DNA of 64,000 nt from Blepharisma stoltei ATCC 30299 (taxonomy: Eukaryota; Protista; Ciliophora): assembly GCA_965603825.1 (NCBI GenBank), contig CBFDEM010000003.1, forward strand, positions 496,001 through 560,000. Direction: 5' to 3'. The notes below the pieces were generated by a model. The model was not told the DNA's origin, made no database searches, and saw only the letters and a list, made by a program, of their open reading frames with translations. A program made the translations under genes and the position numbers. Positions within the stretch are counted from its first letter, which is position 1. Each line of letters begins with the position of its first letter. Shown here one piece after another: positions 1 to 49,598 of this stretch.

Positions 1-3000
1 TTCTGCTTTGACTTCAACTTTTGGAGCACTTGGAGCCTCAGATTGAGCTTTTGCCTTTGGTAGCTCAGCTTTTAATTTGATTCCACCATCACTTGAGCTG
101 CTACTTGAAGACTTTTTCTTTCCTACTTTGATATCAGCTTTTATGGCAGGGCCTTTTACGTCAGCTTTTAGTCCTGGAAGTTTTGCATCAGCTTTAACTG
201 CGATTCCGGCTTTCTTTTTCTTTCCACTATCACTTGAACTGCTGCTTGAAGAGGATTTTTTCTTTCCTCCGATGCTTATTGCTGCTTTTCCAGCTGGTGC
301 TTTAGGAGCTTCAATCTTAGCTTCAACTTTTCCTTTTGGTGCTTCAACCTTTACATCAGCTTTAGGCAACGCTGGTGGTTGTGCTCTAATTGCTATACCA
401 GCTTTTTTCTTATTGTCTTCACTGCTAGAACTGCTGCTGCTTGAGGATCGTTTTTTCTTTCCTCCAATATTAATTCCAATGCCTGGGGCTTTCACCTCAG
501 CTTTTCCTGCTGGAACTTTGACATCAGCTTTGACGTCAACTTTTGCCTTAGGAGCTTCTGCCTTAACAGCAATTCCTGCTTTCTTTTTATTGTCTTCACT
601 GCTAGAGCTGCTACTTGATGATGATTTCTTTTTTCCTCCGATATTTATACCTCCTTTAATTGCAGGAGCTTTTACGTCAACTTTGGCTGATGGTGCTTTA
701 GGTGCCTCCACTTTGACTGCGACTTTCTTTTTGTTGTCTTCACTAGAGCTACTGCTGCTTGAAGAGCCTTTTTTGAGACCAACTTTAACCCCAGCTTTAG
801 TTTCTGGAGCTTTAGGAAGATTTACGTCAGCCTTTGCGGTTGGGCCTTTTACGTCAACTTTAGCTGATGGTGCCTTAGGGGCTTCTGCTTTGATGTTGAT
901 TCCAACTTTCTTTTTCTTGTCACTATCACTGGAAGAGCTGCTTGATGAAGATTTTTTCTTTCCTCCAATTTTGAGGGCAGGTGCTTTAACATCTGCTTTT
1001 ACATCAGCTTTACCTTTGATTTCTGGACCTTTGACGTCAACTTTTGCAGCTGGAACTTTAGGAGCGTCTACTTTCACTGCAATTCCTGCTTTCTTCTTGT
1101 TGTCTTCACTGGAGCTGCTTGATGATGATCTCTTCTTGCCTTTGACATCAATACCTGCTTTAATTGCAGGAGCTTTGACATCAACTTTTCCAGATGGTGC
1201 TTTAGGTGCTTCAACTTTAACCTCAGCTTTGGCAGCTGGGACTTTAGGACCGTCAACTTTGATTCCAATTCCGCCTTTCTTTTTATTGTCTTCGCTAGAG
1301 CTGCTTGATGATGAAGATGACCTTTTCTTTCCTCCAATCTTAATATCTGCCTTTACTGCTGGAGCTTTGACGTCTACTTTTCCAGATGGGGCTTTAGGTG
1401 CTTCGGCTTTGACTTCAACTTTAGCTGCTGGGACTTTAGGAGCGTCAACTTTGATTCCAATTCCCCCTTTCTTTTTATTGTCTTCACTAGAGCTGCTGGA
1501 TGATGAAGAAGATTTTTTCTTTCCTTTGATATCAATACCTCCTTTAATTGCAGGAGCTTTGACATCAACTTTAGCAGATGGGGCTTTAGGTGCTTCAACT
1601 TTAACCTCAGCTTTGGCAGCTGGGACCTTTGGAGCGTCTACTTTGACTGCGATTCCTGCTTTCTTCTTGTTATCTTCGCTGGAGCTGCTTGATGATGAAG
1701 ATGATCTTTTCTTGCCTCCAATTTTGATGTCTGCCTTTACTGCTGGAGCTTTGACATCAACTTTTCCAGATGGTGCTTTAGGTGCTTCAACTTTAACCTC
1801 AGCTTTGGCAGCTGGGACTTTAGGAGCGTCAACTTTGATTCCAATTCCGCCTTTCTTTTTATTGTCTTCACTAGAGCTGCTAGATGAAGAAGATGATCTT
1901 TTCTTTCCTTTGACATCAATACCTGCTTTAATTGCTGGAGCCTTGACATCCACTTTGCCAGATGGTGCTTTCGGTGCTTCAACTTTAATTTCAGCTTTGG
2001 CAGCTGGGACTTTAGGAGCTTCAACTTTGATTCCAATTCCGCCTTTCTTTTTGCCGCTATCGCTTGAGCTGCTTGAAGATGAAGATGATCTTTTCTTTCC
2101 TCCAATCTTAATATCTGCCTTTACTGCTGGAGCTTTAACATCAACTTTTCCAGAAGGAACCTTTGGTGCATCACCTTTGACTTCAACTTTGGCTGCTGGG
2201 ACTTTAGGAGCGTCAACTTTGATTCCAATTCCGCCTTTCTTTTTATTGTCTTCACTGGAGCTGCTTGATGATGAAGATGATCTTTTCTTTCCTCCAATCT
2301 TAAGATCAACTTTCCCACTAGGGGCTTTTACATCGACTTTTCCTGAAGGAACTTTAGGAGCATCTCCTTTGACTTCAACTTTGGCTGCTGGGACTTTTGG
2401 AGCGTCAACTTTGACTGCAATTCCTGCTTTCTTCTTATTATCTTCACTAGAGCTGCTGGAAGATGAGGATGATCTTTTCTTTCCTTTGATGTCGATTCCT
2501 CCTTTGATTGCTGGAGCTTTCACATCAACTTTGGCAGATGGTGCTTTAGGAATATCGCCTTTTACTTCAACCTTGGCGGCTGGTACCTTTGGAGCGTCGA
2601 CTTTGATTCCAACGCCTGCTTTCTTTTTCCCGCTGTCGCTTGAGCTACTAGATGATGAGGATCCTTTCTTTCCTTTGATATTGACTCCTCCTTTAATTGC
2701 TGGAGCTTTGACGTCAACTTTGGCTGCTGGGACTTTAGGAGCGTCTACTTTGATTCCTGCTTTCTTCTTGTTATCTCCGCTAGAGCTGCTTGATGACGAG
2801 GATGATCTTTTCTTTCCTCCAATCTTAATGTCTGCTTTTACGGCTGGAGCTTTGACATCAACTTTTCCTGATGGGGCTTTAGGTGCTTCAACTTTGACTT
2901 CAACTTTGGCAGCTGGGACCTTTGGAGCATCTACTTTGATTCCAATTCCACCTTTCTTTTTATTGTCTTCACTAGAGCTGCTTGATGATGAAGAGCCTTT

Positions 3001-6000
3001 CTTTCCTCCAATCTTTAATCCTGGAGCTTTGACATCAACTTTTCCTGAAGGAACCTTTGGTGCATCACCTTTGACTTCAACTTTAGCTGTAGGAACTTTA
3101 GGAGCGTCAACTTTGATTCCAATTCCGCCTTTCTTTTTGTTGTCTTCACTAGAGCTGCTTGATGATGAAGATGATCTTTTCTTTCCTCCAAGCTTAAGAT
3201 CGACTTTGCCACTAGGAGCTTTTACGTCAACTTTGCCTGAAGGAGCTTTAGGAGCGTCACCTTTGACTTCAACTTTTGCTGCTGGTACTTTAGGTGCATC
3301 AACTTTGATTCCGATTCCTGCTTTCTTCTTATTATCTTCACTAGAGCTGCTGGAAGATGAGGATGATCTTTTCTTTCCTTTGATATCGATTCCTCCTTTG
3401 ATTGCTGGAGCTTTCACATCAACTTTGGCAGATGGTGCTTTAGGAATATCGCCTTTTACTTCAACCTTGGCGGCTGGTACCTTTGGAGCGTCGACTTTGA
3501 TTCCAACGCCTGCTTTCTTTTTCCCGCTGTCGCTTGAGCTACTAGATGATGAGGATCCTTTCTTTCCTTTGATATCGATTCCTCCTTTAATTGCTGGAGC
3601 TTTGACGTCAACTTTGGCTGCTGGGACTTTAGGAGCGTCTACTTTGATTCCTGCTTTCTTCTTGTTATCTCCGCTAGAGCTGCTTGATGACGAGGATGAT
3701 CTTTTCTTTCCTCCAATCTTAATGTCTGCTTTTACGGCTGGAGCTTTGACATCAACTTTTCCTGATGGGGCTTTAGGTGCTTCAACTTTGACTTCAACTT
3801 TGGCAGCTGGGACCTTTGGAGCATCTACTTTGATTCCAATTCCACCTTTCTTTTTGCCGCTATCGCTTGAGCTGCTTGATGAAGATGATCTTTTCTTTCC
3901 TCCGATCTTAATATCTGCTTTTACTGCTGGAGCTTTGACGTCAACTTTGCCTGAAGGAACTTTTGGAGCATCTCCTTTAACTTCTACTTTGGCTGCAGGA
4001 ACTTTTGGACCGTCTACTTTAATTCCAAGTCCACCTTTCTTTTTGCCGCTATCACTTGAGCTGCTTGATGATGAAGAGCCTTTCTTTCCTCCAATCTTTA
4101 ATCCTGGAGCCTTGACATCAACTTTTGCTGCTGGGACTTTAGGTGCATCAACTTTGACTGCGATTCCTGCTTTCTTCTTTCCGATATCACTAGAGCTGCT
4201 TGAAGATGAGGATCTTTTCTTTCCTCCAATCTTAATATCTGCTTTTACTGATGGAGCTTTTATGTCAACTTTACCTGAAGGAGCTTTAGGAGCGTCTCCT
4301 TTGACTTCAACTTTGGCTGCTGGGACTTTTGGAGCGTCTATTTTGATTCCTACTTTCTTCTTTCCACTGTCACTTGAGCTGCTTGATGAGGATGATCCTT
4401 TCTTTCCTCCAATTTTGAGACCAGGAGCTTTGATATCAACTTTGCCTGAAGGAGCCTTTGGAGCTTCACCTTTTATTTCAACTTTTGCTGCTGGGACTTT
4501 AGGACCATCAACTTTGACTGCAATTCCAGCTTTCTTCTTTCCGCTATCACTAGAGCTGCTTGATGAAGAAGATCCTTTCTTTCCTCCAATTTTGAGACCA
4601 GGTGCTTTAATATCAACTTTTCCAGAAGGAGCCTTTGGAGCTTCAGCTTTGACTTCAACTTTGGCTGCTGGGACTTTTGGAGCATCTATTTTGATTCCTA
4701 CTTTCTTCTTTCCACTGTCACTTGAGCTGCTTGATGAGGATGATCCTTTCTTTCCTCCAATTTTGAGACCAGGAGCTTTGACATCAACTTTGCCTGATGG
4801 AACCTTAGGAGCTTCAGCCTTGATTGAAATTCCCGCCTTTTTCTTTCCATCACTGGAGCTGCTAGACGAGCTTCTTTTTCCGCCTATTTTAACTGCTGGT
4901 GCTTTGATATCAACTTTTCCTGATGGTAATTTCGCACCTCCTTTGATTTCTAATTTGGCTTTTCCTTTTCCATCACTGGAACTTGAGCTTGATGACTTCT
5001 TTTTGCCTCCTATACTAACTGCTGGTGCTTTAATTTCTACTTTTCCTGATGGCAATTTAGCGTCTCCTTTAATTCCGATTTTCGCTTTCTTTTTATCGTC
5101 ACTAGAACTACTGCTGCTTGATGATCTTTTTCCTCCAATTTTCAAATTAACACCTACTGGTTTGATTTCTACTTTGGCTTCTGGAGGTTTGTTTTCGACT
5201 TTTGCGGTTTGTCCTTTAGGAAGCATAATTCTCCCAGTTTGTTTTGGTAGCATAATTTTGGCTGAAGGCGCTTTTGGAACTTCAGCTTTTACTTCGATTT
5301 TTCCTTTAGCCTTTCCATCACTTGAGCTGCTGCTACTTGAAGAGTCTTTTTTGGTTAATTTAACTTCTACTTTTGCTGCAGGTACTTTCGGAGCATCGAT
5401 TTTTACACCCACTTTCTTTTTTCCGTCGCTTGAGCTGCTGCTGCTGGATGATCTTTTTCCGCCGATTCTAATCCCAGGAGCTTTGACATCAACTTTTCCT
5501 GATGGTAACTTAGCGTCTCCTTTAAGCTCTACTTTCGCTTTTGCTTTTCCGTCAGAGCTACTGCTGCTTGATGATCCTTTTTTGCCTCCAACTTTCAATT
5601 CTGCTTTGATTCCTGGAGCTTTAATATCAACTTTTCCTGCAGGCAACTTAGCGTCACCTTTAACTGCAACTTTTCCTTTGCCCTTTCCGCTGTCACTTGA
5701 GCTGCTACTTGAAGATCCTTTTCTTTTAATTTCTGGAGCTTTTACTTCAATTTTTCCTGATGGCAACTTAGCGTCTCCTTTAATAGTGATTTTTGCTTTG
5801 CCTTTTCCGCTATCACTGGAGCTGCTGCTTGATTTATCGACTTTAATACCTACCTTTGGCCCTTTAATATCTACTTTTCCAGCTGGTAGTTTAGGTGCTT
5901 CTCCTTTGATTTCGATTTTACCTCTTTTCTTTCCGTCAGAGCTAGAGCTGGAACTAGATGATTTTTTGACTTTGAGACCAACTTTAATTTCTGGCTTAGG

Positions 6001-6380
6001 AGCTGCAACATTTACTTTTGGCCCTTTCAAGTCAGCTTGAACTACAACTTTTCCTTTCTTTTTGCCATCACTGCTGCTAGAAGAGCTGCTTCCTTTTTTC
6101 TTTTTATTGAGGTTAATATCAACTTTAGGCCCTGCAACGCCTGCTTTGATATCCCCGCCAATTTTGATTTCTGCTTTAGGTTTTTTCTTTTTACCATCAC
6201 TGCTGCTACTGCTGCTTGAGCCCTTTTTCTTTTTAGGTACATTTACCTTAACATCTAGACCTCCTTCAATTTTTGCCTTTTTGTGGTGTTTTTTGCGCCT
6301 TTTCCCTGGATCAGCACTGTCGCTAATGCTTGAGCTTGAGCCAGAGCTAGAAGAACTTGAAGATGAGCTTTTTCTTTTAC
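1..6380 (-). repeat. Coding tandem repeat array, roughly 40-62-aa units such as KKRSSSSSSSSEDNKKKGGIGIKVDAPKVPAAKVEVKAPKAPSGKVDVKAPAVKADIKIGG
   Basis: Recurrent gagctgcttgatgatgaag / tcaacttt motifs. Near-identical higher-order blocks: ~2421-2960 vs ~3315-3854 (offset 894) and ~4300-4440 vs ~4650-4790 (offset 348). Confidence 0.95.
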
Positions 6381-7551
6381 TTGGGACGTATGGCTCGACC
6401 TTTAATTCGACTGCTGCTCCTCCATCTGGGGTCGTTAATTTTTTATTTATTTCTTTAGGCTCTCCAGCTTCAGTTTTCTTTACAACTTTCATTGTTGGGC
6501 CAGTTCTTGGGGTGTTTTGGTCTCTCTTTTTACTTCCAATGTTGAAAATCTGCCATGATTTTTCGCCTGGTCTTCTGAAGGCGAATTTAGGGAAGGAAAC
6601 AAAAACTGGGGCACTTGTGCTGGTTACTGCAGGGTAGTTTTCTGGGAACTCAAAGTTTAAGGCTTCAAGGAGTTTTACCTCAGGTGTAGAATCTGCCATG
6701 TTGACTAAGTAGCTTTGAGAATTTGGTTTATTTGTCTTTGGGTCGAATCCGCCGACAATGGTAACTTCATTTCCTTTAACTGCACAGATTGGCTTAACAG
6801 CTTTGATAGGAAGTGAAAAAGGTTCCTTCTTAAAGGCAAGAGAAGTCAAGTCCAAGCTGTAAACGTTTTTATTTACTTTATTTTTGCCATGTTCATCAAA
6901 TCTATGGCCACCTACAAAGTAAATTTTATCATTATAAAGGAAGGTTCCTGGTAATAGTAGACCACTGAGTGGGAATTCTTTGTCCGCATGTGTTTTTTCT
7001 TTTTTCTCTTCGTCTTTTTTCTCTGTTACTTTTTTCTGGAGAAAGACAGTAATTTCGTTTTTCGCAATGTTCTCTTCTACGCTTTTGAAGTATTCCCAAG
7101 AATTTTCTTCTAAGTTGAATCTCATTAATGGTGCTGGTTCTTCTGTAGAAGATGCGACTTCATCCTCAGGCTCAGCCAATCCTCCTACATAGTAAACCCA
7201 ACCCTTGTGTTCATACAAACTACCTTCTTTGGATGGTATTGGCAGGTTGCAGAGGTTGGTCAGCTTCATTGCTTCAGTATCGGCAAGGACAACTTTATTG
7301 GTAAGACATGAAGAGGAATCGCTGCCTCCAGCGAGCATAATCCTGTTCTTTGATAAATATCCGACAGCTGAATCAGAACGAAGCTTGATGCCTGTGGAAA
7401 ACTGGATTTTTTTGATTTTTCCATCAGGGTGGAGGTGAAGAATTTTCTTTTTATGTCTATTTAGGTAATAAAACTCTGGCATTTTTGCGCCTGCTTGGGG
7501 TCTAATTGTACGCTGCGTGGCAACGTCTTGCTTTGAAGTGCATGCTCCCAT
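1..7551 (-). CDS. Giant (>2517 aa, runs off the window) Kelch-like beta-propeller protein with N-terminal MGAC acylation motif and a long K/P/A/V/G + poly-Ser repeat tail
   Basis: ATG at 7551: MGACTSKQDVATQR...PEFYYLNR...RIMLAGGSD...VYYVGG...IYFVGG...VTIVGG (Kelch-type GG motifs). The frame is consistent down to base 1 (spot-checked). The N-terminal ~330 aa are clearly paralogous to 11787..13517. Absent from the ORF track because no stop lies in the window. Confidence 0.9.
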   Translation of the reverse strand, partial: MGACTSKQDVATQRTIRPQAGAKMPEFYYLNRHKKKILHLHPDGKIKKIQFSTGIKLRSDSAVGYLSKNRIMLAGGSDSSSCLTNKVVLADTEAMKLTNLCNLPIPSKEGSLYEHKGWVYYVGGLAEPEDEVASSTEEPAPLMRFNLEENSWEYFKSVEENIAKNEITVFLQKKVTEKKDEEKKEKTHADKEFPLSGLLLPGTFLYNDKIYFVGGHRFDEHGKNKVNKNVYSLDLTSLAFKKEPFSLPIKAVKPICAVKGNEVTIVGGFDPKTNKPNSQSYLVNMADSTPEVKLLEALNFEFPENYPAVTSTSAPVFVSFPKFAFRRPGEKSWQIFNIGSKKRDQNTPRTGPTMKVVKKTEAGEPKEINKKLTTPDGGAAVELKVEPYVPSKRKSSSSSSSSSGSSSSISDSADPGKRRKKHHKKAKIEGGLDVKVNVPKKKKGSSSSSSSDGKKKKPKAEIKIGGDIKAGVAGPKVDINLNKKKKGSSSSSSSDGKKKGKVVVQADLKGPKVNVAAPKPEIKVGLKVKKSSSSSSSSDGKKRGKIEIKGEAPKLPAGKVDIKGPKVGIKVDKSSSSSSDSGKGKAKITIKGDAKLPSGKIEVKAPEIKRKGSSSSSSSDSGKGKGKVAVKGDAKLPAGKVDIKAPGIKAELKVGGKKGSSSSSSSDGKAKAKVELKGDAKLPSGKVDVKAPGIRIGGKRSSSSSSSSDGKKKVGVKIDAPKVPAAKVEVKLTKKDSSSSSSSSDGKAKGKIEVKAEVPKAPSAKIMLPKQTGRIMLPKGQTAKVENKPPEAKVEIKPVGVNLKIGGKRSSSSSSSSDDKKKAKIGIKGDAKLPSGKVEIKAPAVSIGGKKKSSSSSSSDGKGKAKLEIKGGAKLPSGKVDIKAPAVKIGGKRSSSSSSSDGKKKAGISIKAEAPKVPSGKVDVKAPGLKIGGKKGSSSSSSSSDSGKKKVGIKIDAPKVPAAKVEVKAEAPKAPSGKVDIKAPGLKIGGKKGSSSSSSSSDSGKKKAGIAVKVDGPKVPAAKVEIKGEAPKAPSGKVDIKAPGLKIGGKKGSSSSSSSSDSGKKKVGIKIDAPKVPAAKVEVKGDAPKAPSGKVDIKAPSVKADIKIGGKKRSSSSSSSSDIGKKKAGIAVKVDAPKVPAAKVDVKAPGLKIGGKKGSSSSSSSSDSGKKKGGLGIKVDGPKVPAAKVEVKGDAPKVPSGKVDVKAPAVKADIKIGGKKRSSSSSSSSDSGKKKGGIGIKVDAPKVPAAKVEVKVEAPKAPSGKVDVKAPAVKADIKIGGKKRSSSSSSSSSGDNKKKAGIKVDAPKVPAAKVDVKAPAIKGGIDIKGKKGSSSSSSSSDSGKKKAGVGIKVDAPKVPAAKVEVKGDIPKAPSAKVDVKAPAIKGGIDIKGKKRSSSSSSSSSEDNKKKAGIGIKVDAPKVPAAKVEVKGDAPKAPSGKVDVKAPSGKVDLKLGGKKRSSSSSSSSSEDNKKKGGIGIKVDAPKVPTAKVEVKGDAPKVPSGKVDVKAPGLKIGGKKGSSSSSSSSEDNKKKGGIGIKVDAPKVPAAKVEVKVEAPKAPSGKVDVKAPAVKADIKIGGKKRSSSSSSSSSGDNKKKAGIKVDAPKVPAAKVDVKAPAIKGGVNIKGKKGSSSSSSSSDSGKKKAGVGIKVDAPKVPAAKVEVKGDIPKAPSAKVDVKAPAIKGGIDIKGKKRSSSSSSSSSEDNKKKAGIAVKVDAPKVPAAKVEVKGDAPKVPSGKVDVKAPSGKVDLKIGGKKRSSSSSSSSSEDNKKKGGIGIKVDAPKVPAAKVEVKGDAPKVPSGKVDVKAPAVKADIKIGGKKRSSSSSSSSSDSGKKKGGIGIKVEAPKVPAAKAEIKVEAPKAPSGKVDVKAPAIKAGIDVKGKKRSSSSSSSSSEDNKKKGGIGIKVDAPKVPAAKAEVKVEAPKAPSGKVDVKAPAVKADIKIGGKKRSSSSSSSSSEDNKKKAGIAVKVDAPKVPAAKAEVKVEAPKAPSAKVDVKAPAIKGGIDIKGKKKSSSSSSSSSEDNKKKGGIGIKVDAPKVPAAKVEVKAEAPKAPSGKVDVKAPAVKADIKIGGKKRSSSSSSSSSEDNKKKGGIGIKVDGPKVPAAKAEVKVEAPKAPSGKVDVKAPAIKAGIDVKGKKRSSSSSSSEDNKKKAGIAVKVDAPKVPAAKVDVKGPEIKGKADVKADVKAPALKIGGKKKSSSSSSSSDSDKKKKVGINIKAEAPKAPSAKVDVKGPTAKADVNLPKAPETKAGVKVGLKKGSSSSSSSSEDNKKKVAVKVEAPKAPSAKVDVKAPAIKGGINIGGKKKSSSSSSSSSEDNKKKAGIAVKAEAPKAKVDVKADVKVPAGKAEVKAPGIGINIGGKKKRSSSSSSSSSEDNKKKAGIAIRAQPPALPKADVKVEAPKGKVEAKIEAPKAPAGKAAISIGGKKKSSSSSSSSDSGKKKKAGIAVKADAKLPGLKADVKGPAIKADIKVGKKKSSSSSSSDGGIKLKAELPKAKAQSEAPSAPKVEVKAE

Positions 7552-7672
7552 ATTAATTATATTAAGGAATTATGGCCACATAATCTTGGCTTATACGTTA
7601 AATAGGACTTAAATAAGAGATAGAGATAAGGACAGAGCATAGAAATAATCACGTCTTAAAATTAGAAATAAC

Positions 7673-13517: not shown

Positions 13518-14422
13518 GATACAGAGTATAACTCATTGACTAAAAGAACGAAATTTCTATTTAATAATTATAAAATCAATCAATCAAGCATTGCATCATT
13601 TTATTTTATACTTAAAATCAGTAATTACTTTATTCCAACCTTCATAATAATTAATGTCTTTAATCTCTTGCTTATTTAATTTTATAAGTGGACTTAATTA
13701 GTGATAATATAAAGTATATTTATATTTTGGGGTTGGCCAGCAATTAAATTTACTAATATCAAATATATTTAATACCGAATAATGCATTTGAAACAATTTA
13801 TCGAGCTAGACATTAAAGTTAATATTTATTTTGGCTCTTATTCTTATTTTTTAGATTTTTATAATTGTCTAAATAGTTAACTACTTTATAAATTAAAAAT
13901 ATTAAATATAAATGCAAAGAAATTCTGTAAAAACCTTACAAAAGGAAAGTTTGGCTAGATTAACACCTATAAATAAATCTTAAAGGCTGCATTACTTAGA
14001 TAACAATTAAGCTTAGCTTATTAAAAAATATACTTGTAATAAACTAACTAAAAATTCCAGAAAATCGTTTGGGATTTGGAAAGCACCAATGACTTTTAAT
14101 AAAAATCATTTTTATTAATTTCCGTACCCCTTAAAGGAATTATCATATTCCCTAAGTCTATTATATTTTCTATCAAACTTTACCATTCCTATAAAGACTT
14201 CTTCTTTATATTTTATCATGCCTAACTGCGATTATATCAATAATTAATTTTCTAATTAAAACAATTTTTTACTATCTTAATTAACTCATCCTCTAAAATA
14301 GGAATCCCTATCTATCCACTTCCTTCTAATCTTTTTATTTTGTGCCTCAAACCCATCAAAAATTTTCTAAAAAATATATCAAGGCCATTAGTCTATTGGA
14401 AAACGCATAGTAATATTTTAAA

Positions 14423-17400
14423 ATGTCAAGGAAACTTTGGATTGCCTTGTGGATTTTGATACTTTTCGAAGGAACTTTAGCTATCAAAAGCGATATTAAT
14501 CAGCAAAAATTAGATAACAACCAAATCTTCGTTCAATTATCTCAAGAAGAAACTGCTGGAGAAAGCACTGGAGAGACCACGACTGCTGAGTCTGAAGAAT
14601 ATGCTTCAACTGAGGAGCAAACTGCTGAGGAGTCATCAGTTGATACGAGTACAGAAGAAGAAAGTGAGGATTCTAGTACTTTTACAGAAACAACCTCAGA
14701 AGAGACCTCAACTGAAGAAAGCGCTGCTGAATCTCAAGAAGAGACTGCCGCTGAAGAGAGCTCTGAAACTCAAGAAGAGGCTGCAAGTGAAGAAGAAGCA
14801 GCTCAAAGCTCTGAAACCCAAGAAGAGGCTGCAAGTGAAGAAGAAGCAGCTCAAAGCTCTGAAGCCCAAGAAGAGGCTGCAAGTGAAGAAGAAGCAGCTC
14901 AAAGCTCTGAAACTCAAGAAGAGGCAGCAAGCGAAGAAGAAGCAGCTCAAAGCTCTGAAACTCAAGAAGAGGCCGCAAGTGAAGAAGAAGCAGCTCAAAG
15001 CTCTGAAACCCAAGAAGAGGCTGTAAGCGAAGAAGAAGCAGCTCAAAGCTCTGAAACCCAAGAAGAGGCTGCAAGTGAAGAAGAAGCAGCTCAAAGCTCT
15101 GAAACTCAAGAAGAGGCTGCAACTGAAGAAGAAGCAGCTCAAAGCTCTGAAACTCAAGAAGAGGCTGCAACTGAAGAAGAAGCAGCTCAAAGCTCTGAAA
15201 CTCAAGAAGAGGCCACTGAAGAAGCTGAAGAAGACGTTGATGAAGATGAAGATGAAGATGAGGATGAAGATGAAGAAGAGGATGAAGATGAAGATGAAGA
15301 TGAAGTAGATGTTGATGAAACCTCTGAAGAATATGAAGAAACTGCCGAAGAATATGAAGAAGCTGCCGAAGAAGCTGCTGAAGAAGCTGCTGAAGAGGAC
15401 GTTGATGAGGATGAGGATGAGGATGAAGATGAGGACGAAGATGAAGTTGAAGTTGAAGGGTCCTTGACTCAAACAGAAATATCAGACGAGGATGAAGATG
15501 AAGAAGCAGAACCAACAGCAACTTATATCCCAACCGCAGAAACAGAAGAAGAATCTGAAGCTGCTGAAGAGGAAGAAGATAGCGCACAATACGACGAAGA
15601 CGTTGCTGAAAGCATGGAAGACACCCAAGACGAAATCGAAGATGAAAATGAAGAAGACGCCGATGAAAAAATGAACGATGTTGACGAATTAGATGAAGCA
15701 ATTGACGAGCTTGAAGATGTCAGCGGTGAAAACTCTGAAAATGGCTATGTTATGCTTGATGAAGACACCTTAGAAGATGTAAACGAAGCCTACCAAGAAA
15801 TCCTCTGGAACCTCGACGAAAACTCCACAGTCGAAATTAACGGCGAAATCTATACTTATGACGACATCCAAGCTGCAACTGAAAACACTGACAAACTGAT
15901 TGAAGACTTCGACGAAAACGACGCAGAATACGTCACTTTCTCAGAGACGGGGCCACTTTATTTAGATGAAGACGAAGCAGAAACAGTCGAAGAGATTAAT
16001 GAAGCCAACGATGTCTTAGTCTCCACTGAAACAACAGTAACCCTTACCCTCGACGATGTTGAAGAGTTAATTGACTATTATACTGAAGCTGTCGCAGGCT
16101 TAGAAGAAGGCGAAACTATGGACACTATTGTAGGAGAAGACCAGACTGCTGAAGAAGTCAATGAACTTATTGTCAGTTTAGAAGACATCAGTGAAGATAT
16201 GGATGACGGAGACCTTGTCACCATTGACACAACCACCATGACTTATACCATTTATGATGGCGATAACATTGAAGAAGGTGAAGAAGACAGAGAAGAACTC
16301 ACTGACGAAGTCGCTGACTTGCAAGAATACTATGATGAAACCCAAGAAGAAATCGCTGAAGGACAAATCGAAAAGACTGAAGACGACCTTGAAGATTTAA
16401 TTGACGATTTAGAAGATGTCGACGAACTGTTAGAAGAAGGCGACACTGTCCTAGTGGGAGAAAAGACATATACACAAGAAGATATCCAAGGGCTTATTCA
16501 AGACGCAGAAGCCTTAATTGATAATCTTGACGAAGAAGACGCAGAGTCAGTTACTTATAATGTGGAAACCCAAACAGTTTCATATATAAGTGAAGACCAG
16601 TATGAGATGGTAGAAGATATTGAAGATGAAGGATACTTGGTAAATCAAGAAGTCATTGATACGGATGAGGATGAAGTCACTGATGTTGATGAAGTCGACA
16701 CAGACGAGGTTGATGTAGATGAAGTCGATGAAGCTGATGTCGATGAAGTTGACGAAGATGAAGCTGACGTCGATGAAGTTGACGAAGATGAAGCTGATGT
16801 CGATGAAGTCGACGAAGATGAAGCTGATGTCGATGAAGTTGACGAAGATGAAGTTGATGTCGATGAAGTCGACGAAGATGAAGCTGATGTCGATGAAGTT
16901 GACGAAGATGAGGTTCAAGCAGAGTCCACAACTACCAATATTCTAGTCCCAACAGAAACTGGAGAAACAGAAGATCTTGATGAAGATGAAGAAGAAGACC
17001 TAGAAGAACTAGAAGATGCCGTTGACGAACTTGAAGATATCGAAAATGATGCATATGACGAATATGGCGAAGATGTACAAATCATTGACGAAGATACCCT
17101 TGAAGACGTAGCTGACGCCTATGAAGTTATCGTTGAAAACATGGACCCTGAATCGACTATTGAAATAAGTGGAGTAACTTACACTTATGAAGAAATCGAA
17201 CAAGACTATGCTGAAATTGAACAAACTCTTGAAGAAATTGATGAAAATGATGCTGATGCTATCTTAATTACTGATGATGACGAAATTGTACTAGCTGACG
17301 ATGATACTCTTGATGAAGCTGAAGAAATCCAAGAGGCAAATGAAGTCCAAGCTTCTGATGAAACCTACGTTCTTTTAGACTATGAAGACGTCGAAGAGCT

Positions 17401-18541
17401 ATTAGACTGGCTTGAAGACGTAGAATTAGAAGAAGGAGAAACAGTTAGCACAGTCCTTGGTGCCAACCTCACAGCTAGTGATGTAGACGAGCTTCTTGTC
17501 AGCTTAGAAAACATGCTTGATGATATTGAAGAAGACGGTGACGACCTCGTCAAAGTCAACTTGTCAACAGGCACTTATGAAATCGCTGAAGGCGACTTTG
17601 TAGAAGATGAAGCAGATAGAATTGAAGACCTCGATGAAGAAGTCGAAGACTTAGAAGACGTTTATAATGAACATCTTGAAGATGGAACTACCAGCTCTCT
17701 TACTGATGAAGAAGCTGAAGACTTACAAGAAGACTTAGAAGATGTATTAGACTTAATGAGTGAAACAGATACCATCACAGTCGGAGAATTGACCTTAGAC
17801 TCTGAAGGTGTTGAAGCTCTCGTTGATGACGTTGATGAATTAGTCAAAACTTATGATGAAAACGACGCAGTCGAAGCCAGCTACTCAGAAAGCGCAACCT
17901 CTATTGTCTACGCTGACGAAGATGAAGCTGACCTTAAAGATGAAACTGAAGATCTTGAAGAAATCTACAATGAATTCGCTGCCCAAGCTGAAACTGGCTA
18001 TATTACTACCACTATTGAGGATTCTGAAGACAAAATTGACGAAATTGAAGACGTTCTTGACGTCCTCCCAGAAGACGGCACCATAACCCTCGGCACCACT
18101 ACATTTACAGCAGCCGATTTAGACGAAAAAATAGAAGCCAATGAAGACTTTATTGATGAACTTGAAGATGAAGATGCAGAAGGCGCCACCGTAATCTTGG
18201 CAACTGGAGAAAAGGTTTATCATGAAGAAGACGAGCTTGACTTACAAGCTGATTATAATGATATTATAGACGATCTAATTTCAAATGAAGATGGCACATT
18301 TACAATGACTGAAGACACAGTGGACGATTTCATTGAGTTCTTAGAAGACGTCATTGACTATTTGGATGATAACGATTTAGAGTATATCACTATTAATGGA
18401 TATGATGTCACAACTGAAGGAGCTGAAGCTTATCTTGCTCTTTTAGAGGACTGGGCAGATGAAATAGATGATAGTGATAGCAATGCTGTTACAGTGATCC
18501 CAAGCTCAAATACCTTTATGTATGTTGAAGTTGAAGAATAA
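14423..18541 (+). CDS. Secreted hyper-acidic repeat protein, 1372 aa
   Basis: Signal-peptide-like N-terminus (MSRKLWIALWILILFEGTLA). Strongly D/E-rich with very few K/R and no Cys in the translation. Uninterrupted ORF with internal repeats. Confidence 0.9.
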   Translation: MSRKLWIALWILILFEGTLAIKSDINQQKLDNNQIFVQLSQEETAGESTGETTTAESEEYASTEEQTAEESSVDTSTEEESEDSSTFTETTSEETSTEESAAESQEETAAEESSETQEEAASEEEAAQSSETQEEAASEEEAAQSSEAQEEAASEEEAAQSSETQEEAASEEEAAQSSETQEEAASEEEAAQSSETQEEAVSEEEAAQSSETQEEAASEEEAAQSSETQEEAATEEEAAQSSETQEEAATEEEAAQSSETQEEATEEAEEDVDEDEDEDEDEDEEEDEDEDEDEVDVDETSEEYEETAEEYEEAAEEAAEEAAEEDVDEDEDEDEDEDEDEVEVEGSLTQTEISDEDEDEEAEPTATYIPTAETEEESEAAEEEEDSAQYDEDVAESMEDTQDEIEDENEEDADEKMNDVDELDEAIDELEDVSGENSENGYVMLDEDTLEDVNEAYQEILWNLDENSTVEINGEIYTYDDIQAATENTDKLIEDFDENDAEYVTFSETGPLYLDEDEAETVEEINEANDVLVSTETTVTLTLDDVEELIDYYTEAVAGLEEGETMDTIVGEDQTAEEVNELIVSLEDISEDMDDGDLVTIDTTTMTYTIYDGDNIEEGEEDREELTDEVADLQEYYDETQEEIAEGQIEKTEDDLEDLIDDLEDVDELLEEGDTVLVGEKTYTQEDIQGLIQDAEALIDNLDEEDAESVTYNVETQTVSYISEDQYEMVEDIEDEGYLVNQEVIDTDEDEVTDVDEVDTDEVDVDEVDEADVDEVDEDEADVDEVDEDEADVDEVDEDEADVDEVDEDEVDVDEVDEDEADVDEVDEDEVQAESTTTNILVPTETGETEDLDEDEEEDLEELEDAVDELEDIENDAYDEYGEDVQIIDEDTLEDVADAYEVIVENMDPESTIEISGVTYTYEEIEQDYAEIEQTLEEIDENDADAILITDDDEIVLADDDTLDEAEEIQEANEVQASDETYVLLDYEDVEELLDWLEDVELEEGETVSTVLGANLTASDVDELLVSLENMLDDIEEDGDDLVKVNLSTGTYEIAEGDFVEDEADRIEDLDEEVEDLEDVYNEHLEDGTTSSLTDEEAEDLQEDLEDVLDLMSETDTITVGELTLDSEGVEALVDDVDELVKTYDENDAVEASYSESATSIVYADEDEADLKDETEDLEEIYNEFAAQAETGYITTTIEDSEDKIDEIEDVLDVLPEDGTITLGTTTFTAADLDEKIEANEDFIDELEDEDAEGATVILATGEKVYHEEDELDLQADYNDIIDDLISNEDGTFTMTEDTVDDFIEFLEDVIDYLDDNDLEYITINGYDVTTEGAEAYLALLEDWADEIDDSDSNAVTVIPSSNTFMYVEVEE
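14758..15212 (+). repeat. 48-bp (16-aa, EEEAAQSSETQEEAAS) coding tandem repeat, 9 copies plus a partial
   Basis: gctcaaagctctgaa recurs every 48 bp from 14801 to 15185. Confidence 0.95.
16736..16912 (+). repeat. 30-bp (10-aa, DVDEVDEDEA) coding tandem repeat, about 6 copies
   Basis: gatgtcgatgaagt(t/c)gacgaagatgaag recurs with a 30-bp period. Confidence 0.95.
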
Positions 18542-46553: not shown

Positions 46554-49500
46554 TTAAACTTCGCCTTCATCAAATTTTCTCTGAGCCTTCAATTTCTGCG
46601 GCTTTGGGCAGAGTCTGCCTAATTTTTTGCACTCTATGCATTTATCAGGACTATACACATCTTCTCCATTATATTCAGCATGAAAGTTACATTCTGGCCT
46701 ATGATAATGATTTCCATGCACTAATGTTGGCGCTCTTATGCACGAACACCTAAAGCAAAATTCAATTCCACAATCAGGCTGGGTGCATTTTACATGATCG
46801 CAGGCGTTGTCCTTTAGATAAGGATAATGGCATCCTGGACATTCAGATACTGACTCTCCTTCTTTTTCTAAGTCTCTCAAGAGTTCTTTTCTTTCATTCT
46901 CATCACAGCTTCCTTCGTGCTGATCTTTCAGACATGCAGCACAAAATTTAGCTTTACATTGAGGACACCTTACCTTGTTTTGATCTATTTCAAATTCTGA
47001 ATTGCACTTAGGGCATTCTGTGATTTTGTATTGCTTTTTTATTGAAATTTTATTATAATGGTCCCATTTTTCTGGACTCAAATTGGCAATCATAATACTT
47101 CCGTCTACTATCTCTAGGCACTCTGGAATAGGGCATTTAATTCCATTTATTATTCTCCCAGAATCTATTTCGCTTTCTAAATATCCCACTAAGCAATTTT
47201 TGCAAAAATAATGGTCGCAGGACAATGTAAGCATTTCTGCTCTTGAAAACTCTTCAATGCAAACCGCACAGCTTTTTTTAGATGGCAGAGGAGCAGGGTC
47301 TTCAAATTTCTTTAAAACTGAGATGTCAATCTCTTCTATCATTCTCCCACAAAAATAACAGACACTACCATTATCATTTACACATGAGTTAAAGCAGCCT
47401 TTACAAATTGTGCAGGGACACAAGCTTGGATTTAAGTCTTCTTGATTAAAGCTTCCCTTACAAATGTCACAGTAAAATTTATGATGGGTAGAAATCAGTT
47501 CATACTCTCCTTTACTGAAATTTCTGTGACAGAAAATACAATTTTGTGGTAAATAGCTGAATGATTCACAATTGATACACAGTCAATGTGTCTTACACTT
47601 TACCAAGCTAAATTCTGTAATAACCTCTTGGCAATACCCACAAACAGGCTTCACAATCCCAACAATTTCTTCCATCCTAATTTCTTCTTCACAAATAGGA
47701 CAAATTTTGGTTTGCGACACAATATTACTAATGCAGCTGTCACACATGCACTTGTGCTTATTCCTAAAATCTTCCTGCTTTTTCCTTCCTTCACAGTTAG
47801 GACATATGATGATTCCTTGTCCCCTATCTATTTTGTGCTGATATTGTTTTTGCCTTTCTTCTCTCATCTTGTCATAGTCTTGCCAGGTATTTCCTAATAC
47901 GGCTTTTACTTCGTCTTGACTAATTTCTTGGGTACACATCAGGCATGTTATAGGTGAGGTTTTTTCGAATGGGTTTAGTAAGAACATCCCTGCTGTTTGC
48001 TGCTCTAGGCAGTCGATTATGTCCTCTTGGCAGTATAAGTGACCGCATTTTAGCATAATGCAAGCTTGTTTTTCTTGGCAGTAAAAGCAGATTTCTAATA
48101 GTCGACAAGCGAAATTATCGCTCTTAGCCAATTTTAATAGATTTTCTTCAGCTTTAGTCAAATCGCTTAAGGATGGGCTATAATTGCAGTTATCTAAGCT
48201 TGTAAATTCATTCCAAAAGCTAGAAATCCTCTGACCGAAATCTGGGAGAAGATCCGATCTATGCAACTTATTACTCACTGATAAATGATATAAATTTTCA
48301 TATAAATACTGGACATGATTCAGCAGTTTTGCTGTGTAGTCTTCTGGAGCTCCTCGGACTGCTTGTTGATCACTACGATTCTGTGATCCTTGAGGCAAAA
48401 ATTGGCATGTTTCTAAGTCATAGCAGTCGTCTTGAATTTGTTTATGGGTGTAAAGCAAATCATAATGCCCAGGCTTCAATAGTAAATACATATCAGAATT
48501 ATTGCTTTCTTCAGGCTCAAAAGTATGAATGTCCAGTCCATCTCTTCTTAAGCAAATATGGTGGATCCTTATCTGAAGAGCTTCTGACATACAATTAAAG
48601 GCCACTCCTTCAGCTTCTTCTCCCATTTTCATCATTTTCATATACACAGACTGAGTAGTCCCGTATCCAATTTCATCAGAGATTAGAAATCCAGAAAGTT
48701 TTGTGCTTGTAGAATTATCAACTAAGTATAAAGAAGCAATTGCTCTCATTTCTCTGACAATAGTCTCATCATCGTTTATATCTTGAAAAATATTTTGAGC
48801 CTCTTTTATAGCTGACCATACATTTGCCTTTTTGCAGCTATATAAATAATCTAGGAGCTTTAAAAATTCTTTTCTGCGACTAAACCCATTAATTTCTCTA
48901 AAAATTCCTTGTCTTTTCTCAAGCTTGCTTATAAACTTTTCAAACTGGCTTAAATTTGTAGTTGGTCTACACAAGTGCTCGATATAGCTGACTCCTACAG
49001 CGCGATAATAGCAGTTCCCATCACCTCTTGACCTTCTGAATGCTGCATATTCTGTCCCCAATTTTTCAATACATTCTATTATTTTGCTGTTAAAAGCAAA
49101 TTCACTCTTCAGATAATATATATTTATTCTTGATTTTCCTACAGTTTCTGGGTATTCTTCATCGCCACCTTCTATCTTTTGTATCTCTGGTTCTGCGTTT
49201 TTTTCTTCTTTAACTATTACGTTCCAAATTTTCCCATTTTCAGACTTGTATAGAGTGACTTGAGATCCGACTAAAGGTTTAACTTTATCGATTGTAAACA
49301 GATTTTTTGGGACTATTATGCAAACAGAAGAATTGTATGAGGCTTGAACATTCACTAAATAGTTCTCTATTCGGTCTTCAACGATAATTCCGTCAACTGT
49401 GGAGTATGCATTGTATAGCTCAGCTTTATGATATTTGTCATTGTAATGGTAAATCCTTATCACAGAGTTTATAGGGGCTTTACTAATTCACGATGACGGG

Positions 49501-49598
49501 AGTGCAAGGTGCATTTGGTCTTCTGGTATGTATACTAGCAATTTATTGTCCTTGACTATCTGAGCACGCCCAAATACTTCCCTTTTATTTAGTTCCAT
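46554..49598 (-). CDS. OTU (otubain-like) deubiquitinase fused to multiple RING-like fingers and an RBR (RING1-IBR-RING2) E3 ligase, 1014 aa
   Basis: ATG at 49598. TGA codons near 49488 and at 47583 read as W; no TAA/TAG between 47583 and 47423. OTU: RRSRGDGNCYYRA...LLKPGHYDLLY. RBR: CAVC..CDHYFCKNC..CPIPEC; CPKC..CPQCKAKFCAAC..H...C; CPGC..KDNACDHVKC..CGIEFCFRC. Confidence 0.9.

Follow-up and report, generated by a model that had tools for sequence, protein, structure and literature searches.

E3 ligases and deubiquitinases usually pair non-covalently, and covalent fusions of the two are rare. The textbook case is A20 (TNFAIP3), the classic ubiquitin-editing enzyme, in which an OTU deubiquitinase and zinc fingers with ligase activity share one chain. 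In the linear ubiquitin chain assembly complex (LUBAC), the RBR ligase HOIP is paired in trans with OTULIN or CYLD; HOIP and OTULIN are held together non-covalently by PUB-PIM contacts, and the OTU deubiquitinase controls auto-ubiquitination and chain output. The subject here is a gene on the minus strand at positions 46554-49598 of a 64,000-nucleotide stretch of the genome of Blepharisma stoltei ATCC 30299 (hereafter the window; G000:C3:496001-560000). Its predicted product of 1014 amino acids (aa) carries an otubain-type OTU domain and a complete RBR (RING1-IBR-RING2) module. The reading preferred below, with a probability of about 0.6, is that it is a multidomain RBR ligase with a built-in, apparently active otubain that would act on ubiquitin chains in cis. 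The initial annotation of this DNA knew of no characterised OTU-RBR fusion, and literature searches covering 8.1 million PMC papers and bioRxiv likewise found no description of an RBR fused to an otubain. A VTD-type deubiquitinase fused to an RBR has been noted from genomes of Agaricomycetes (PMC9741609).

How does the Blepharisma protein compare with these systems? The VTD-RBR proteins of Agaricomycetes likewise place a deubiquitinase and an RBR ligase on a single polypeptide (PMC9741609), but their deubiquitinase is herpesvirus tegument-like and unrelated to OTU, they occur in mushrooms, and the RBR stands in another context. A20 also carries an OTU deubiquitinase and zinc fingers in one chain. 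However, an A20-type OTU matches the present model with a Z score of only 8.1 (against 23.5 for OTUB1), A20 lacks a thioester-forming RBR, and the present protein has no Pfam match to zf-A20; on the Z score and the missing zf-A20 match, membership of the A20 type was rejected. LUBAC with OTULIN likewise pairs an RBR with an OTU deubiquitinase, fused here and non-covalent there, and OTULIN belongs to another OTU subfamily (Foldseek E value 4e-8, against 3e-13 for otubains). A20 and LUBAC-OTULIN are functional analogues.

Closer likenesses are found for each half taken alone. OTUB1, OTUB2, and the plant OTUB-like proteins share the fold and the GDGNC and GHYD motifs of the OTU domain, but they are small stand-alone enzymes, whereas the present domain is one part of a 1014-aa protein, flanked by beta-barrels and a zinc-finger/RBR part, and an N-terminal ubiquitin-binding helix like that of OTUB1 is not predicted in the AlphaFold2 (AF2) model. 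The Ariadne, RNF144, HOIL-1, and parkin ligases share the RING1-IBR-RING2 order and the catalytic Cys of RING2, and the RING1 resembles those of RNF144A, ARIH2, and HOIP. Unlike these known RBRs, the present protein has no Ariadne domain, UBA, Ubl, RING0, or transmembrane helix; it has instead a further pair of conserved RING-like fingers just upstream of the RBR and, after RING2, a CxxCx6C knuckle with a conserved tail. In sequence it has little similarity to any RBR of solved structure (best E value, 1.9e-10).

One gene across two UGA codons

The minus strand at 46557-49598 of the window translates as a single open frame of 1014 codons, closed by a TAA stop at 46554-46556. Exactly two internal stop codons lie within it, and both are TGA (codons 37 and 672). 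The features concerned are these:

46554..49598, minus strand: complete coding sequence without an intron (from translation; identical to public protein P0001)
49488..49490, minus strand: TGA codon 37, read as Trp, within a confidently modelled beta-barrel domain (predicted local distance difference test score, pLDDT, about 90)
47583..47585, minus strand: TGA codon 672, read as Trp, inside RING finger 3; finger ligands flank the codon, and P0002 has W here

The macronuclear genome of this strain has been described as AT-rich and gene-dense, with 41 Mbp in 64 telomere-to-telomere sequences, UGA reassigned to tryptophan, and introns of 15 or 16 nucleotides (nt) (PMC9942806). The source assembly of the window (G000) consists of 41,464,486 bp in 64 contigs. 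Within the window, open reading frames (ORFs) of at least 300 codons total 30.1 kb with TGA as a stop and 48.3 kb with TGA as sense, and most long frames hold in-frame TGA beside TGG. The standard code would cut the present frame into a 626-aa piece with a GTG start (ORF 47583-49463) and a 289-aa piece with a TTG start. No ATG occurs in this minus-strand frame between TGA37 and the codon of the OTU catalytic Cys.

What argues that the two pieces belong together? The spacing of finger 3 is C-x2-C-x11-C-x2-H-x2-C-x2-C-x10-C-x2-C, with TGA672 immediately after the His, so that four of the zinc ligands precede the codon and four follow it. The public gene model, P0001, is 1014 aa long and has W at both TGA sites. 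P0002, from an MMETSP transcript of a relative, is a predicted ORF of 733 aa; it is 75% identical and is the sole source of transcript evidence. Without a break it covers the C-terminal half of the OTU domain, every finger, the RBR, and the shared C-terminal tail, with W aligned to position 672. We infer that its translation did not read TGA as sense and hence that this W should be encoded by TGG; its start, at the first Met beyond residue 251, is where an in-frame TGA further upstream would be expected to put it. Three more distant proteins, P0003 (926 aa), P0004 (937 aa), and P0029 (938 aa), have the identical domain order as single ORFs, with 30-38% identity over the full length.

Hidden introns were also considered. 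The frame contains three internal 16-nt GTA..TAG motifs, but with any of them removed the conserved RBR would fall out of frame, and P0002, which derives from a transcript, contains the residues that they encode; on both grounds the motifs were rejected as introns and the gene is taken to be intronless. Because finger 3 straddles TGA672, and because P0002, the orthologue ORFs, the position of TGA37 inside a modelled domain, and P0001 all agree, the locus is confirmed, at the level of sequence, as a single macronuclear gene, free of introns, in a heterotrich ciliate that reads UGA as Trp. The initial annotation had joined two separately tracked ORFs into one 1014-aa protein by reading TGA as Trp, and TGA as the only internal stop, the RING finger spanning codon 672, and the uninterrupted ORFs of relatives bear this out. 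Its expectation that a standard-code annotation would split the gene does not hold for the deposited model, which already has 1014 aa. A zinc finger that spans a reassigned UGA codon makes a clean example for annotation.

Domains of the predicted protein

From the N terminus, the predicted order is beta-barrels, otubain OTU, helical linker, four RING-like fingers, RING1-IBR-RING2, and a zinc knuckle plus tail:

49206..49598, minus strand: tandem small beta-barrels, residues 1-131 (AF2, pLDDT 76-94, ten strands)
48429..49163, minus strand: otubain-type OTU domain, residues 146-390 (Pfam PF10275, PDB matches, structure alignment)
48099..48398, minus strand: conserved helical linker, residues 401-500 (AF2 helices and orthologue alignment)
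47934..48089, minus strand: zinc finger 1, residues 504-555, RING-like with non-canonical spacing (Cys pattern; pLDDT 95-97)
47820..47918, minus strand: long helix before finger 2, residues 561-593 (model of the C-terminal half)
47691..47804, minus strand: zinc finger 2, residues 599-636, RING-like, non-canonical (Cys pattern; sub-threshold zf-C3HC4_3, E value 0.027)
47529..47642, minus strand: zinc finger 3, residues 653-690, canonical C3HC4, spanning TGA672 (Cys/His pattern)
47349..47471, minus strand: zinc finger 4, residues 710-750, C4C4 RING spacing (ligands invariant or near-invariant in 48 relatives)
47118..47270, minus strand: RING1 of the RBR, residues 777-827 (Pfam zf-RING_UBOX, 2.2e-7, and zf-C3HC4; structure matches)
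46905..47015, minus strand: IBR of the RBR, residues 862-898 (Pfam IBR_1, 2.6e-10; aligned to ARIH1)
46689..46841, minus strand: RING2/Rcat of the RBR, residues 920-970, with Cys933 (Pfam IBR, 2.6e-8 over residues 907-953)
46608..46640, minus strand: C-terminal CxxCx6C knuckle, C987, C990, and C997 (near-invariant in 48 relatives)
46557..46607, minus strand: conserved C-terminal tail (consensus P.KL..PRRF...E)

The OTU domain matches the Pfam family Peptidase_C65 (PF10275; MEROPS C65) with an E value of 1.1e-27 and 97.6 bits, against a cut-off of 24.3, over profile positions 10-242 of 243, and rice OTUB-like, OTUB1, and OTUB2 are found among PDB sequences at E values of 1e-15 to 1e-12. The catalytic motifs lie where the initial annotation had placed them, near 49011 and 48465: GDGNC is residues 192-196 (Asp193 and Cys196, the latter encoded at 49011-49013), and PGHYD is residues 376-380 (His378 and Asp380, with the His codon at 48465-48467). 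All 13 stand-alone otubains checked have the same GDGNC and GHYD.

An AF2 model of residues 1-480, built on a 36-sequence alignment, has a mean pLDDT of 85.3. The best structural match of its OTU domain is OTUB1 in 4ddg, a chain of the OTUB1/UbcH5b~Ub/Ub complex, with a Z score of 23.5 and a root-mean-square deviation of 2.5 over 219 residues (VIA-align). Foldseek matches otubains with a probability of 1.00 and template-modelling (TM) scores of 0.7-0.82 depending on the target (0.8 for OTUB2), while the structures of OTULIN, OTUD, and A20 match clearly less well than OTUB1. All sequence and fold criteria applied place the domain in the otubain family, and its motifs are intact, as in an apparently active deubiquitinase.

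The second half of the fusion holds the RBR. The Pfam matches to RING, IBR_1, and IBR are all above their cut-offs, and an AF2 model covering residues 481-1014, built on 48 sequences, has a pLDDT of 90.9. In structure alignments (VIA-align), RING1 matches RNF144A (Z score of 13.2) and RING1 of HOIP (10.7), and the RING1-IBR unit matches ARIH2 (11.6) as well as HOIL-1 and parkin (about 10), for a range of 9-12. The catalytic position lies in the motif KDNACDH (residues 929-935), where Cys933, encoded at 46800-46802, aligns with the Cys of “GGCNH” in ARIH1 and is invariant in 48 relatives. A complete RING1-IBR-RING2 with its catalytic-position Cys near 46800 had been claimed in the initial annotation, and both the Pfam matches and the alignment to ARIH1 agree with it. 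By every sequence and fold criterion applied, this module is a member of the RBR superfamily.

Is it, then, an Ariadne ligase? The best PDB sequence relative is ARIH1, with an E value of 1.9e-10 over about 200 residues, but the match is limited to the RBR core. No Ariadne domain follows RING2; the 44 residues past Cys970 hold the CxxCx6C knuckle and a short tail. Ariadne membership was rejected on these two points. H966, like Cys933, is invariant in the 48 relatives, and together with the knuckle it probably forms a third zinc site.

Four further Cys-rich modules lie between the two catalytic parts. C504, C507, C518, and C552 of finger 1 are invariant in five orthologues, and fingers 1 and 2 are conserved among the long forms of the family only. 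The second-half ligands of finger 3 are nearly invariant in 48 relatives, and its counterpart in P0002 matches zf-C3HC4_3 at 2.4e-4. Finger 4 has weak structural matches to the C4C4 RING of CNOT4 (Z score of 4.2) and the RING of TRAF3 (4.4). The four RING-like modules of the initial annotation are therefore present as Cys patterns, with canonical spacing in fingers 3 and 4, but fingers 1 and 2 are non-canonical, and the Pfam support for the set stays below threshold.

The N-terminal barrels, the linker, and the C-terminal knuckle and tail are features beyond those listed in the initial annotation. In the AF2 model, residues 1-131 form two five-stranded beta-barrels. Residues 6-131 resemble EF-P (Z score of 9.4) and eIF5A (8.1), and the second barrel, residues 62-133, resembles the cold-shock domains (CSDs) of Unr and Lin28 (Z scores of 7-8; all VIA-align), but scores of 7-9 lie in a range that may stem from nothing more than a widespread small-barrel arrangement, and the description is limited here to tandem small beta-barrels. 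There is no significant Pfam match for this region. In the same direction, weak profile matches are to eL6 (E value of 0.004, profile to PDB) and, for one member of the alignment, to KOW6_SPT5 (1.8e-4), and a language-model atlas gives S1/CSD leads at noise level (score of 0.80). The barrels are conserved in P0003, P0004, and P0029 and are a putative ligand- or substrate-binding head.

For the linker that follows the OTU domain, the N-half model (pLDDT of 61-75 over 421-470) predicts helices at residues 419-442 and 454-469, and the C-half model (pLDDT of 84-86) a helix at 481-501. Its residues L425, H428, E434, L436, and P452 are invariant in five orthologues.

Relatives and the OTU active site

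A full HMMER scan, covering 1.84 billion cluster representatives, returned 2777 proteins at an E value of ≤1e-3 and 68 at ≤1e-30. With hidden Markov models (HMMs) built from family alignments, an OTU domain together with the same RBR subtype was found in at least 21 representatives among the proteins fetched. One of these, P0027, is listed in its source under the dinoflagellate Durusdinium trenchii, and the fusion architecture therefore reaches beyond ciliates. The initial annotation had proposed a check for the same architecture in other protists; with at least 21 representatives, that of D. trenchii included, the fusion is not a one-off. Searches of the ESM Atlas found no large cluster in which PF10275 and IBR occur together.

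The two catalytic parts have fared differently among these proteins. The OTU Cys and His are intact in 10 of the 21 fusion representatives and lost in the other 11 (P0033, P0034, P0050, P0053, P0068, P0083, P0113, P0120, P0125, P0136, and P0163). The RBR Cys, the knuckle, and the tail are retained throughout the fusion family, and the RBR ligands, the knuckle, and the tail are near-invariant in the 48 relatives.

The same division is seen within B. stoltei itself. A paralogue of about 957 aa lies on the minus strand at G000:C1:590976-593848 (locus L009, 211-3093), with an N-terminal domain, OTU, four fingers, RBR, knuckle, and tail. In its OTU domain LDINS replaces GDGNC and the His motif is lost, while the RBR catalytic Cys is kept; by sequence, it is a pseudo-otubain. 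A further group of relatives, roughly 800-830 aa long, has at most marginal traces of the C-terminal sheet of the OTU domain, and “short” relatives of this kind may be fragments or ORFs cut at reassigned codons. In a tree of the RBR domain, OTU-active, OTU-dead, and OTU-less forms are intermixed, but the tree comes from a quick search with midpoint rooting and backbone SH-aLRT (approximate likelihood ratio test) values of 54-96, and with so weak a backbone and so arbitrary a root it supports no count or direction of OTU losses.

How much of this is new? The sequences were already in public collections with Pfam labels, and the existence of the gene is not new; nor is domain shuffling among parts of the ubiquitin system in protists surprising in itself. 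New are the recognition of the family, the extra modules, and the dichotomy between active and dead OTU domains. The family adds a hitherto undescribed RBR subfamily defined by its two upstream RING-like fingers and its C-terminal knuckle and tail.

Some observations on the relatives concern their origins and their other domain combinations. P0003, P0004, and P0029 come from compact, eukaryote-like metagenome contigs and are inferred to be from ciliates. The P0003 gene is on contig k141_1347888 of ENA ERZ27280279 (96 kb, locus L018), which is very gene-dense and places it beside histone and ribonucleotide-reductase small-subunit genes; the source's gene caller, whose genetic code is not stated, gave each of these genes as an intact ORF, and this points to a compact protist genome that has not reassigned UGA.

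In the B. stoltei assembly, P0049 (787 aa; G000:C26, L010:1-2232, plus strand) has the same RBR subtype, knuckle, and tail at its C terminus and carries a full eukaryotic aspartyl protease domain as well (Pfam PF00026, 4.7e-52). Between the protease and the RBR lie a long Gly/Ser/Asn-rich stretch and a hydrophobic segment, giving an apparent membrane-spanning fusion of a pepsin-like protease and an RBR. The ESM Atlas also holds a 179-member cluster of roughly 750-aa proteins with an otubain and B-box zinc fingers. Fusions of otubains with zinc fingers may be a broader protist theme.

Possible roles of the otubain, and the surrounding sequence

What might an otubain do when it is tethered to an RBR ligase? 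Under the preferred reading, the RBR would receive ubiquitin from an E2 on Cys933 and pass it to a substrate or modify itself. Being part of the same chain, the OTU domain would bind ubiquitin or chains at the ligase and trim them, and this trimming would either reverse auto-ubiquitination or edit the chains that the ligase had built. Half of the family has a dead OTU yet keeps both the domain and the ligase, and catalysis alone can therefore not be what the OTU fold contributes across the family; most plausibly, the shared contribution is binding of ubiquitin or E2~Ub. Such binding would probably be the ancestral contribution of the domain, with catalysis kept in the present copy as an added editing activity.

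Several points weigh against this reading. Enzymatic activity (including the writing and erasing of chains proposed in the initial annotation), coupling between the domains, linkage type, and substrates are all read from the domains present, and the Pfam RING matches of the middle fingers are those below threshold. The two halves were modelled apart, with predicted TM scores (pTM) of 0.61 and 0.45, which makes the arrangement of the domains unreliable and leaves coupling of OTU and RBR in cis structurally unsupported. Finally, the frequent loss of the OTU site among relatives indicates that the ligase works without deubiquitinase catalysis, and the intact triad here may be dispensable.

That last point leads to the strongest alternative, which is possible if clearly less probable than a built-in active otubain: an RBR ligase whose otubain fold is a non-catalytic module that binds ubiquitin or E2~Ub and acts allosterically or by positioning the acceptor, with little contribution from the intact triad of this copy and no real editing. 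Established precedents speak for such a module: OTUB1 is well known to bind E2~Ub without catalysis, and allosteric ubiquitin is a common activator of RBRs. So do the 11 of 21 fusion representatives and the paralogue of the same genome that lack the OTU Cys and/or His while keeping the domain, the fingers, and the RBR Cys, as well as the roughly 800-830-aa relatives in which OTU sheet traces are at best marginal. However, GDGNC and GHYD are strictly kept in the present protein and in nine other representatives, as they are in the 13 stand-alone otubains, which points to selection on catalysis, and the OTU-active forms are spread along the RBR tree (with its weak backbone) rather than being a single relic.

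A broader and equally tentative speculation takes the binding role as its starting point. An otubain may have been recruited early in alveolates into a distinct class of RBR, made up of a beta-barrel head, OTU, RING-like fingers, RBR, and zinc knuckle, as a receptor for ubiquitin or E2~Ub, one that sets chain type or gating and in which hydrolysis is optional. If this were true, RBRs would be regulated here in a way that those studied so far in animals, fungi, and plants have not shown, and the active and dead paralogues of one Blepharisma genome would be a natural experiment.

Otubains are also known for silencing E2 enzymes, and a third explanation, an improbable one that was the second alternative of the initial annotation, is that the OTU domain works in cis in the manner of OTUB1, inhibiting the charged E2 that serves its own RING or RBR and so acting as a built-in brake. 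The domain does belong to the otubain subfamily, its top structural match is an OTUB1 chain from the complex with UbcH5b~Ub and ubiquitin, and the catalytically dead relatives are compatible with a role in binding only. In OTUB1, an N-terminal helix that precedes the OTU core holds the donor ubiquitin and is needed for E2 inhibition. The AF2 model predicts no helix between the barrels and residue 160, and residues 133-141 are disordered (pLDDT of <50); because no helix is predicted ahead of the OTU core, inhibition of this kind is less likely.

The weakest explanation, two genes (an OTU-RING gene ending at the TGA at 47583 and a separate RBR gene), an assembly chimera, or a pseudogene, finds some footing in the cuts that the standard code makes at 49488 and 47583, but it was rejected as very improbable given a genome code with UGA as Trp, a RING finger that spans the TGA, a relative's transcript ORF that crosses the site with W, orthologues fused without a stop, no ATG for the middle piece, and conservation over the full length.

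As a conserved protist family of otubain-RBR fusions with both apparently live and dead OTU versions, these proteins offer a compact system for two questions: how a deubiquitinase domain shapes the output of a thioester-forming ligase, and whether the non-catalytic, ubiquitin- or E2-binding side of otubains is the older function. Covalent fusions show which activities need coupling, and this one is a useful lead for ubiquitin enzymologists.

Elsewhere in the window, two regions (1-7569 and 14338-18538) differ in composition, with GC content raised to 0.40-0.43 and an extreme AT skew that reaches -0.38 at its lowest and +0.29 at its highest. Very long frames overlap there on both strands (for example, frames of 2523 and 2211 codons), and some of the alternative frames are rich in TGA. 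Both regions look like long low-complexity or repetitive coding sequence.

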